Below are positions 11,419-14,559 of a DNA stretch of 14,651 nt, in pieces. Position 1 is the stretch's first letter, and the number at the start of each line of letters is the position of its first letter. Made by a program: the position numbers and the translations under genes. The notes below the pieces were generated by a model. The model saw nothing but the letters and a program-made list of their open reading frames with translations. It did no database searches and was not told the DNA's origin. This stretch comes from Vitrella brassicaformis CCMP3155 (Eukaryota > Protista > Chromerida). Location: assembly GCA_001179505.1 (NCBI GenBank), contig CDMY01000865.1, positions 1-14,651 of the forward strand. The letters run 5' to 3'.

Positions 11419-14400
11419 TTAGGTATTCTTGTCCCTGCCCCTGCTCGTGCCGGTGCTGTGTGTGGTGGTGGTGCTCCTCTCTCCCACCCCACCCATCTCC
11501 CTCTCCCTCTCCCTCTCCTTGGCCCTCTCGTCAGTGGCCCCTTCGCTAATGCTCATGAGCGCATCGAACTCGGGCAGCTGGTACTGATAAAACGTCCCCA
11601 ACTGCAGTGGATGGATGCACCAACACACACACACACACACTGATGGGAGAGGGTGAGAGGGCGGTGGTGAGGTGTGCTGGCTGACCATGAGGCTCGCCAC
11701 GAATACGCCGCAGCAGACGACCGAGTTGAGGTACTCGTGGAGAAACGGGAAGCGTTCAGGGGCAGGCACTACCATCTGCACACACACGACCACACACACG
11801 GGGAGAGACCAGATGAGCAACAACAGCCCGTGGAGCAAGGGTCATTACGCCTACATGCAAGCAGAACAGCCCCGCCAAGACGCCACAGACGCAGACCAAC
11901 ACGGCCGTCCACCCAAAGCCGCACCCCGCCAGCGCACTCCACGCTGCAGTCCTGTCGTCTCGGATTCTGCACCTCTCGGCCATCCGTCGCGCCACGAGCT
12001 CTCTGTCTTGGGCGCGTGCACGGCGGCCGTGTGGCCCCGAGAGGTTGGAAATCTCGCTGGAGTCGTGCATCAGCAGCCGGGCGTGTGCCGACAGGAAAGC
12101 CCCGAGATGGCGCCATTGGGAGGGATCGGCCAGACATGAGAGGCTCAGATGGCCTGCAAAGAAAGAAAGAAACGGATGTGTCTGTGGGGATGGGTTGTGG
12201 GGTATCGGCTGGGTATGTACCTCTTGAGGTGGCCTGTATGGTGGCCACGGCGAGAGCCACCCACGCGACGGTGAGGATGACGAACGACGGCAGCAGCTGG
12301 TCCTTGAGCATCAGAGGCAGCAGCGAGTAGCTCGCCGCCAGCAGCAACACGACACACGACGCACCTACAGCACACACGAACAGACCACCACTCTCTCTCC
12401 CTCTCTCCCTCTCTGTCCATCTGTCCATTGCTCACCGTATTGTGGCAGGAGCAGGCACGCAGGCAGTGCGGGCAGCAGGATGGCCTTCTCATGCACTTGC
12501 CACGAGAAGAGAAAGAAGCTCATCGAGCAGTTGAACAGACACACCTCGAACCGCTTCGCCGTCGGCCGCCGCATGACGTCCCAGCAGGAGGGGAGGAACC
12601 CCACAGCCGTCATCCACGCGGCCACCCCGACGGCCCACTGCAGGTGCACCCCGTTGTCCATGGCTGCGAGCCGTTTCAGCTTGACGATTGGCGAGAGAGC
12701 CACCCACACCGTCGCCGCATAGTCCTCGTAGAGGCCGCGGTTGAATGGGAACACGCGACGGAGGATCGGGATCAGCGAGGACATGCGCAGTGACTGAACG
12801 GGCCGAAAGAGAGAGAGAGAGAGAGAGAGAGGTGGTTGGGGGGTTGAAGGCGTGCAGGTGAGTGCGCTCACTCACCGCCAGCAGCCTCTCTACCAGGCTA
12901 TTCCCAGGGACCTCTTCCTCCCCAGCCAACAGAAAGGGCATCAACACCACAAGTGCCGTCAGGACGACCACCAGACCGATCTTGGCCACGTTGACAACAG
13001 CGGTGAGCGGGCGCACGAATCTCAGTCGGCGTCTGATGCCCTTGTCGACGGCCACTGTGCGGGTGGACAGGCCCAGCAGAGTGAAGAAGAAAGCAGGGGC
13101 GTAGTAGAGCAGCGTCTGCTTGTACAGCAGGGCGAGGGTGAAGGCTATATACCCACACACATCCATCCACACAGAGAGAGACACTGATGCATTGTACGTG
13201 TCGGCGTGGATCATGCACTCACCTGAAGCGGCGATCAGGTATCTCTTAGTGGCAATGAGGCCCACCGCCCAGAGAGTCAGGCCGAGCGCCACGCAGTTGT
13301 ACTGGAAGTGGCCATGGTCGATCAGAATGAACGCCGGACACAGCAGCAACAGACACAAGGTCGACACACGCATCCGCCAGCTGAACCCTTGACACTGACA
13401 CGCACAGACACACACACATGCATCCATCCGCCCATCCATCCATTCACCAGAACACGCCCACCTGCATTGCGCAAAGGGCATAGTAGATGGCTGCCGTGAA
13501 GAAGACCAGCACGTCGGCCAGCAGGACGGTCATGCGCATGAAGAGCTTGTGCGTGGGCGTCTCGTACCCACGGGACGTCAGCAGCTCCACCGACTGCGGC
13601 TCATATGCCGCACTCGCGAGGCCGCACGTATACATGTGGTAGGCCGTGAGCGGGGGGTAGTCCAGACCCCAGTACTGCAGGTCATTCGCGTCACTCTCCA
13701 CGTACCTGATCCCCATTCACACAGACACACACACAGAGACATCCACGCGTGCAATTGGGGCTCTCCATTTCTCCCTATTCCTCCTATGGACTGACCAGTC
13801 CCTGATAGGGAGGTTGGTGGTGATTTCCATCCAGTGCCGCTGCGCCTCGTAGTCGCCATGCATCGGGGGCACCCCCCACCCCGAACAAGGGTATACGCCC
13901 ACAGCCAGCCGGCACAGCACCGCCAGTAGCACCACCACACCCACGCCGGTCACCCGCAACCGATGCCGCTCCACAAACCCCAGCAGCGAGGCGACAACCG
14001 CCGCGCCACTGTTGCCGTCCCCCTGTTGATGCACGTTCTTGTCGTCCATCAGCCGGTCGTTCTGCACTGATCTGTAGACGAGCGCAGAGAGTCGGTTGAC
14101 CATCTCGGATAGCGTGATCAGGGGGGTCCAGGCCTCCTGCAGCACGTCCCTCGTCAGCTGCTCGGGCGTCTGGTTGTAGAAGGGCCATGCGAACGACTGG
14201 CAGGCGATGAGCGGCGGGAGGAAGGGATACTGTCTGCTCACGTCAATCACAAACACGGCCTCCTGCGGCGGGTCGGCTCCCCGCAGCTCTCTCAGAAAGA
14301 ACTTGCCGCTGAAGGATAGATAGATGTGGCAGCCCGAGTCCACCTGTGCTGATGTGATAGTCACGCCCTCATCCAGTTGCTGCTCGAGCAGGCTCAGCTC

Positions 14401-14559
14401 CCTCTCGATGCGCAGGCGGAAGATCTGCTCCCTGGCGGACTTGTCGTCGGCTGGATGATGCTGCTGGTGTCTATCTTGCTGGGCTGATGGTGCGGTTGAT
14501 GCGGCATCGTCCGATTGCTGCGACGCTGTGGCAGAGCGGCGACGGGGCTGCGACTCCAT
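11419..14559 (-). CDS. ALG6: Dolichyl-PP-Man9GlcNAc2 alpha-1,3-glucosyltransferase ALG6 carrying an extra N-terminal UBC/UEV-like domain, ~840 aa
   Basis: Exons 14559-13796, 13705-13462, 13394-13223, 13144-12876, 12793-12436, 12364-12221, 12153-11855, 11775-11686, 11601-11419 (2523 nt, all GT-AG, in phase). ALG6-type motifs: PPMHGDYEAQRHWMEITTNLP (ALG8 instead has STDFEVHRNW), [104 protein letters not shown]. Confidence 0.93.
14074..14424 (-). other. Ubiquitin-conjugating-enzyme-like domain (catalytically inactive, UEV-type), aa ~46-162 of the ALG6 ORF
   Basis: E2-fold landmarks occur in the expected order: helix-1 RLRIERELSLL, strand FVIDVSRQYPFLPPLI (cf. F.L.I.FP.DYPFKPPKV), and DVLQEAWTPLITLSEMVNRLSALV (cf. 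DIL..QWSPALTISKVLLSICSLL). No HPN motif; Thr at the position of the catalytic Cys. Recognised by eye, not by HMM. Confidence 0.7.

Follow-up and report, generated by a model that had tools for sequence, protein, structure and literature searches.

The ubiquitin-conjugating (UBC) fold is known as an active enzyme in the class I E2s (UBC4/UbcH5/UBE2D, UBE2W) and, stripped of the catalytic cysteine, the HPN motif and the C-terminal helices, in the UEV proteins (Mms2/UEV1/Ube2V1, TSG101). The RWD domains (GCN2, RWDD1, RNF25, FANCL) belong to the same superfamily, carry a YP-x3-P-type motif and serve as non-catalytic binding domains. In TMEM189/Kua-UEV1 a membrane enzyme is joined to a non-catalytic UBC fold by read-through of adjacent human genes, with the UEV part C-terminal. 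Active E2s of endoplasmic reticulum (ER)-associated degradation (ERAD) are anchored at the ER either as tail-anchored proteins (Ubc6/UBE2J) or in the Cue1-Ubc7 pair. Here we describe the ALG6 gene of the chromerid Vitrella brassicaformis CCMP3155, located on the minus strand of contig CDMY01000865.1 (positions 1 to 14,651, all 14,651 nucleotides (nt) of which are hereafter called the window). Its annotated product (CEM35747.1 / A0A0G4GXE4, P0001 in our set), a protein of 840 amino acids (aa), is named only 'Alpha-1,3-glucosyltransferase', although its first exon encodes a degenerate E2-like domain in frame with the first transmembrane segment (TM1) of ALG6. We consider it probable that this is an alveolate-wide fusion of a dead E2 to ALG6, in which the domain would act as a cytosolic binding module.

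The locus resembles each of these systems in part. With class I E2s, its best matches in both sequence and structure, the domain shares the R-x3-E pattern of alpha1, the YPF-x2-P loop, L-x3-W-x-P and the Y-to-W spacing, but it lacks the catalytic Cys, HPN and the alpha3/alpha4 helices, scores below the UQ_con cut-off and is fused to a 14-TM-type glycosyltransferase. It has the UBC fold of UEV proteins along with their losses, but it has no significant match to the Pfam UEV model and is membrane-tethered. Some ciliate members of the family pass the RWD cut-off, whereas the Vitrella domain falls well short of it and its W-x-P and profile matches indicate an E2 core. Unlike the UEV part of TMEM189/Kua-UEV1, the domain is N-terminal, lies in the same exon as TM1 and is conserved across a eukaryotic supergroup. 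The domain matches, among other structures, Ubc7-Cue1 (4jqu), but unlike the ER-anchored E2s it is dead and anchored through a biosynthetic enzyme. Finally, the GT-C core and its key residues are those of canonical ALG6 (yeast Alg6, 6SNH/6SNI), which is 476-560 aa long and has no folded cytosolic N-terminal domain.

The E2-like domain and the enzyme that carries it

A phmmer search of aa 41-178 against all PDB sequences recovered yeast Ubc1 (E 4.9e-7) in an alignment that pairs LTRDVL with ICLDIL, and a profile of eleven family members matched UBC4, UbcH5 and UBE2W at E about 2e-10. The AlphaFold2 (AF2) model computed from the family alignment (mean predicted local distance difference test, pLDDT, 84.9; predicted template modelling score, pTM, 0.75) consists of alpha1, a set of four strands into which a short helix is inserted, a pair of short helices near the former active site and a long alpha2 (domain residues 110-139); the linker that comes next has low confidence and leads into TM1. 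Foldseek placed UBE2W and UBE2D at the top ranks, with a probability of 1.0 to E2s, and VIA-align returned Z scores of up to 10.7 to E2 structures and of 9.9/9.5 to Ube2V1/UEV1. Both the model and its E2 structure matches thus display the UBC core fold of alpha1, a four-stranded sheet and alpha2. The domain is homologous to E2 enzymes and descends from an E2-like core.

Pfam models do not place the domain in a single family. The gathering cut-offs are 27 bits for UQ_con (PF00179), 22.8 bits for RWD (PF05773) and 27 bits for UEV (PF05743). The Vitrella domain reaches 16.7-20.9 bits with UQ_con, which explains its lack of a domain annotation, and 12.2 bits with RWD, and it has no match to UEV. 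Among the relatives described below, only P0168 attains the UQ_con cut-off (27.1 bits), Blepharisma P0166 (23.5) and again P0168 (24.4) pass that of RWD, and UEV detects two of eleven members at E<=1 (best E 0.026), with further ciliate-clade members at 17 bits or less. Judged by these models, the domain falls between UQ_con and RWD and outside the UEV family, even though it combines a UBC fold with the UEV-like absence of Cys, HPN and C-terminal helices. It fails as an E2 on all four counts (catalytic cysteine, HPN motif, Pfam cut-off, alpha3/alpha4 helices), and we suggest that it is best called a pseudo-E2 forming a family of its own, closest to class I E2s.

The active site appears to be lost throughout this family. 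In the Ubc1 alignment Thr136 replaces the catalytic Cys and W-PFY occupies the place of HPN. The active-site position is covered by 15 of 16 aligned sequences, where it holds T, L, W, A or V and in no case Cys (0/15): T prevails in most myzozoans, L in a Blepharisma-like group, and W, A or V elsewhere. Similarly, the HPN motif is found in none of the aligned members. Because no Cys stands at the active site, the domain cannot carry ubiquitin as a thioester or act as an E2. Catalysis through another cysteine was considered and rejected, as the beta4 Cys (LIACQS) occurs only in some members and would be buried.

What the family keeps is a set of E2 signatures. Y111, P112, F113, P116, L140, W144 and P146 are invariant or nearly so; in the family alignment no variation is seen at P112, P116, W144 and P146, and hardly any at Y111 and F113. 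These residues are the E2 motifs YPF-x2-P and L-x3-W-x-P, and alpha1 retains the R-x3-E pattern. Between Vitrella and Chromera the N-terminal domain is 42.6% identical and the first half of ALG6 48.8%, suggesting similar constraint on both. In two versions, P0065 (Cystoisospora suis) and P0061, long low-complexity inserts break the domain, with about 70 aa in the former HPN loop, and hundreds of S- and E-rich residues precede it, while the YPF and W-x-P blocks are retained.

The remainder of the protein looks like a regular ALG6. Exon 1 alone matches Pfam Alg6_Alg8 (PF03155) at E 5e-9; the full protein matches it at E 1.1e-120 (404 bits, profile positions 8-480 of 482) and yeast Alg6 (6SNH) at E 1.7e-71. 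Bloch and colleagues are said to have described, in 2020, a key role of yeast Alg6 D69. This residue (GDFEAQRHW), D99 (LDYPP) and H378 (VHEK) correspond to D236, D270 and H584 of the Vitrella protein, all invariant in the family alignment, and D99 and H378 are essential in yeast Alg6 (PMC10859629). By sequence matching, ALG6 proteins are the closest named ones and supply the sole PDB match, and the gene is predicted to encode ALG6, the dolichyl-P-Glc:Man9GlcNAc2-PP-dolichol alpha-1,3-glucosyltransferase, as a regular member of GT57.

Several observations bear on membrane topology. In a Kyte-Doolittle scan no 19-aa window exceeds 1.1 before aa 190, and the peak of 2.33 lies at aa 203-222. Three K/R residues precede TM1 and none follow it. 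Cytosolic N termini are found in the related lumenal GT-C enzymes ALG3, ALG9 and ALG12 (PMC13503287). Moreover, the loop after TM1 carries active-site residues that must face the lumen, the site of the Man9 substrate, which would place the UBC-like domain on the cytosolic face, next to the membrane.

Much of this architecture had been read from the letters by an initial annotation. The single stop-free 764-nt exon encoding the UBC-like domain, TM1 and GDYEAQRHW was confirmed by the open reading frame (ORF), the GT donor and the exon limits, and the residue positions it gave (Y111, Thr136 and W144) are correct, with the coordinates of these motifs and of GDYEAQRHW listed in Table 1. It was likewise right that Thr136 replaces the catalytic Cys and that HPN is absent, as the Ubc1 and UBC4 alignments both indicate, and that canonical ALG6 is shorter. 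Its call for a structure prediction was answered by the E2 fold that AF2, Foldseek and VIA-align all returned. Two of its statements stand only in part: of a gapless alignment to the E2 core, the Y-to-W spacing is indeed that of UbcH5, but the HMMER alignment to UBC4 contains one compensated 1-residue indel; and of a catalytically dead UEV on the cytosolic side, the structural claim was upheld while membership in the UEV family was not.

Transcripts, relatives and origin of the fusion

The fusion is not unique to Vitrella but is shared by chromerids, apicomplexans and ciliates. An exhaustive HMMER search with aa 41-254 recovered, besides the query itself, Chromera velia Cvel_26907, 40% identical across the whole query, and several ALG6 proteins with a second matched stretch. 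A local hidden Markov model (HMM) of the N-terminal domain was positive in Vitrella, in Chromera, in an MMETSP transcript (P0151/P0003), in two TSA-derived EukProt proteins (P0021, P0189), and in Cardiosporidium cionae, Cystoisospora suis (with its large inserts) and Blepharisma stoltei. It was also positive in metagenomic proteins that group with Blepharisma (P0123, P0164, P0165, P0167, P0168, P0073 and the N-truncated P0139). In addition, a structure search of AlphaFold DB clusters gave N-terminal matches in A0A1R2ARW2 (residues 2-111 of 619) and I7LWJ3 (15-145 of 693), both named 'Alpha-1,3-glucosyltransferase', and matched the uncharacterised G0QYS6; from their UniProt accession series we take these three to be from Stentor, Tetrahymena and Ichthyophthirius, respectively.

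The top structural matches further include A0A1R2C501, A0EEB6 and an ESM Atlas cluster of 371-aa proteins (348 members, Ciliophora). These ciliate matches are about 365-494 aa long and are not named glucosyltransferases, and ciliates may hold a wider family of the pseudo-E2 domain in other architectures.

Canonical ALG6 is shorter. The full-length profile search returned proteins of 476-560 aa from animals, fungi, oomycetes and Dictyostelium, and Cryptosporidium ALG6, at 529 aa (PMC9713705), thus lacks the N-terminal extension. Precomputed Pfam annotation of the listed fusion members reports only PF03155, except for P0168 (UQ_con). A word-index homologue search, whose index is too coarse for this purpose, returned 0 matches for the domain alone and only itself for region 41-200 of P0001; the relatives were found instead by the exhaustive HMMER search and the full-length profile. 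The literature searched (ALG6 with UBC, apicomplexan and ciliate topics), the main E2-fold survey being outside reach, yielded no description of the fusion, and it is not mentioned in an apicomplexan ubiquitin survey (PMC2408969) or a Cryptosporidium glycosylation review (PMC9713705). The possibility, raised in the initial annotation, that the architecture would prove common and already annotated among ALG6 orthologues is therefore partly borne out: it is conserved in chromerids, apicomplexans and ciliates, yet it is almost never annotated.

Expression data and relatives agree that an annotation artefact does not account for the fusion. Spliced GT..AG joints on the minus strand mark runs X1 and X2 as RNA. 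X1 RNA contigs cover 14576-14274, 14272-13994 and about 13971-13796, that is, nearly all of exon 1, and the last of them is spliced into exon 2; X1 depth over the intron 1 bin falls to 1.79 against about 6.8 on both flanks, and a 402-nt RNA contig on 13478-13703 runs on into exon 1. Along exon 1 the X1 depths are 8.8, 8.4 and 6.8 from 5' to 3'. The 5' part is thus at least as abundant as the ALG6 part, with no rise in depth downstream of the UBC-like segment, which argues against a major internal start. Both parts also lie on one molecule in the complete transcriptome-assembly ORFs P0021, P0168 and P0189 and in the MMETSP transcript P0151, and the Chromera gene model Cvel_26907 likewise encodes the domain together with ALG6. 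In the metagenomic contig L001 a 632-aa protein with both parts is encoded by one intronless 1899-nt genomic ORF.

The L001 sequence (1-7899, carrying P0123) is very gene-dense, with genes 2-5 nt apart and an ALG6 without an intron. Since P0123 groups with Blepharisma, this metagenomic contig probably comes from the macronucleus of a heterotrich-like ciliate.

It is very improbable that the gene model has instead merged a separate upstream UEV-like gene with an ALG6 that starts, without the domain, at an internal Met. Met codons do occur at aa 152 and 171, and two features of the RNA weigh against a continuous message: no single Vitrella RNA contig of run X1 spans the UBC-like domain to TM1, and the contigs are interrupted at 14273 (1 nt) and at 13972-13993 (22 nt, aa 189-196), the latter gap falling exactly between the linker and TM1. 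However, no stop codon or splice signal separates the domain from TM1 in Vitrella exon 1, RNA depth on the 5' part is equal or higher, single complete transcripts and the intronless ORF of relatives encode both parts, and the domain is about as conserved as ALG6 itself. DNA contigs are continuous and identical across 14273 and 13972-13993 despite the breaks in the RNA contigs, which may be due to allelic variants or low depth.

We also weighed whether the two parts were joined once or twice. A tree built from the ALG6 part places the myzozoan fusion proteins in one well-supported clade and those of ciliate type in another; the backbone between these two is not resolved. When all fusion-bearing proteins and their sister P0118 were constrained to one clade, the log-likelihood was 5.9 above that of the free search, with a p-value of 0.645 in the approximately unbiased (AU) test; the data thus allow a single alveolate ALG6 clade, which is also the topology of the best tree obtained. 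A single ancient fusion in alveolates seems likely to us, because both groups share the insertion point, the losses (Cys, HPN, alpha3/4) and alveolate membership. It would have arisen once, at or before the alveolate ancestor, and been lost in some lineages such as Cryptosporidium. By contrast, it is unlikely that a degenerate E2-like domain became attached to ALG6 independently in ciliates and in myzozoans, given that the common insertion point lies directly before TM1, that both lost Cys, HPN and the post-alpha2 helices, that both are alveolates and that the constrained tree beats the free one. Two independent fusions would nevertheless fit the free tree, which does not unite the two fusion clades, and the scores of a myzozoan-only domain profile, which gives ciliate domains 34-54 bits and canonical E2s 39-45 bits, so that the domain sequence alone fails to show a common fusion ancestor. 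Ciliates also seem to have other, non-ALG6 proteins with this fold.

Gene model and surrounding sequence

The features of the locus are collected in Table 1. Over the part searched (aa 41-254) the translation of the window is 100% identical to P0001. The ORF 14559..13717 (-), of 280 aa, starts from the ATG at 14559; an in-frame TGA lies a few codons upstream of this ATG, and a GT donor stands right after 13796. The final TG of exon 1 joins the G at 13705 to give the junction ...PIRDW/[23 protein letters not shown]. Alignments of the relatives begin at Vitrella aa 41 and do not include the leader.

Table 1. Features of the Vitrella ALG6 locus, in window coordinates
Feature	Position	Strand	Basis or remark
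ALG6 gene of Vitrella brassicaformis	coding sequence 14559 to 11419, stop TAA 11421-11419	-	nine exons, from RNA joints and annotated protein
Minimal 5' untranslated region	14560..14576	-	RNA contig of run X1 reaches 14576, 17 nt upstream of ATG
Exon 1	13796..14559	-	764 nt, phase 2, single open frame, aa 1-254 plus 2 nt; matches P0001
Low-complexity leader, S/Q/H/A/D-rich, aa 1-42	14434..14559	-	translation; outside conserved family block
UBC-fold pseudo-E2 domain, aa 43-179	14023..14433	-	phmmer, family profile, AF2 model, Foldseek, VIA-align
Y111-P112-F113, E2 'YPF' loop-4 motif	14221..14229	-	aligned to YPF of UBC4
Thr136 codon ACG at E2 catalytic-cysteine position	14152..14154	-	HMMER alignments to Ubc1 and UBC4
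W144-T-P146, E2 'W-S-P' loop-7 motif	14122..14130	-	W144 and P146 invariant in family
Linker, aa 180-202, basic end ERHRLR	13954..14022	-	low pLDDT in model
TM1 of ALG6, aa ~203-225	13885..13953	-	Kyte-Doolittle scan; aligns to TM1 of yeast Alg6, 6SNH
GDYEAQRHW, aa 235-243, first lumenal loop of ALG6	13831..13857	-	Pfam Alg6_Alg8, 6SNH alignment, family-invariant residues
Intron 1	13706..13795	-	GT..AG, contains (tg)n microsatellite; RNA depth drop
Exon 2	13462..13705	-	sequence, RNA contig; starts [23 protein letters not shown]
Rest of ALG6 gene, exons 3-9 and introns	11419..13461	-	RNA joints; protein matches P0001

Further downstream in the gene, introns at 13145-13222, 12794-12875, 12362-12432, 12153-12219 and 11776-11854 were confirmed by RNA joints, and one at 11602-11685 is supported by the loose end of an RNA contig. 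Introns of ALG6 are all short (67-90 nt), and the ones examined closely contain (tg)n, (ct)n or (ga)n microsatellites; several such stretches were skipped as repeats when reads were mapped. At the exon 2/3 junction (13386-13394) the annotated exon 3 starts at 13394 (...AMQ/CQGFSW...), and an RNA contig of run X2 matches the window only to 13386, beyond which it carries 23 other letters. The true exon 3 acceptor may differ by a few codons, or X2 may represent another strain.

The last ~43 bases of the contig (14609-14651) are a high-copy repeat, where DNA-run depth is about 8-fold up (360 vs 46; 88 vs 11) and many loose-ended contigs converge. This repeat probably explains why the assembly contig stops there. 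Elsewhere in the window, 6557-7123 (-) and 4959-5495 (+) mark further genes: one of these ORFs has an HMG box (E 2e-9) and the other matches the C-terminal part of a MOZ/SAS (MYST) acetyltransferase (E 2e-9).

Possible roles of the domain

We propose that the domain would serve ALG6 as a binding module without catalytic activity, held near the membrane on the cytosolic side. Its putative partner may be a component of the ubiquitin system, such as an E3 of the RING or U-box type, an active E2 or ubiquitin itself, that would regulate the turnover of ALG6 or bring the enzyme into a complex. We favor such a partner only tentatively, because the invariant residues include the sites at which E2s contact RING/U-box ligases and E1; indeed, the E2 contact positions in alpha1, the Phe of YPF and the Pro of W-x-P are all kept. 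A consideration that pulls the other way is that YPF and W-x-P are also fold determinants, and their conservation does not prove an E3-binding surface. The main alternative, which we hold to be somewhat less probable, is that the domain serves as a generic, ubiquitin-independent scaffold, like many RWD and UBC-fold domains, for example by supporting ALG6 dimerisation or by docking ALG5, the dolichyl-phosphate-glucose (Dol-P-Glc) synthase, or the Dol-P-Glc flippase, and so channelling donor to the lumenal active site. The complete loss of the active site would suit a scaffold, as would the short linker to TM1 in ciliate-like versions, which holds the domain against the membrane face, and the Pfam scores, which put members as near RWD as UQ_con, with P0166 (Blepharisma) and P0168 (MMETSP transcript) passing the RWD cut-off. 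On the other hand, the best profile matches are all canonical E2s, with no RWD among the 60 matches listed, and the alpha1, YPF and W-x-P signatures of E2s are kept.

The initial annotation put forward, as a hypothesis, that ubiquitin sensing by the domain might couple glucosylation to ERAD. A bolder version of the ubiquitin-system reading, which we regard as a long shot, is that the dead E2 might be an alveolate-wide cytosolic receiver, acting through an ER RING/U-box ligase, an E2 or ubiquitin. If true, the receiver would link cytosolic proteostasis or ERAD status to the first lumenal glucosylation of the N-glycan precursor, a regulatory link across the ER membrane that is not known in yeast, plants or animals.

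The usual view of ALG6 is that of a simple housekeeping enzyme without regulatory parts. A folded, conserved cytosolic domain that extends from ciliates to chromerids points to a function that is not visible in opisthokont models, which may be regulation, turnover control or complex assembly. The architecture is present in Cystoisospora, a close relative of Toxoplasma, and, if our reading of the accession is right, also in the genetically tractable Tetrahymena. The family adds to the UBC superfamily a new group of membrane-tethered pseudo-E2s that standard Pfam annotation misses.

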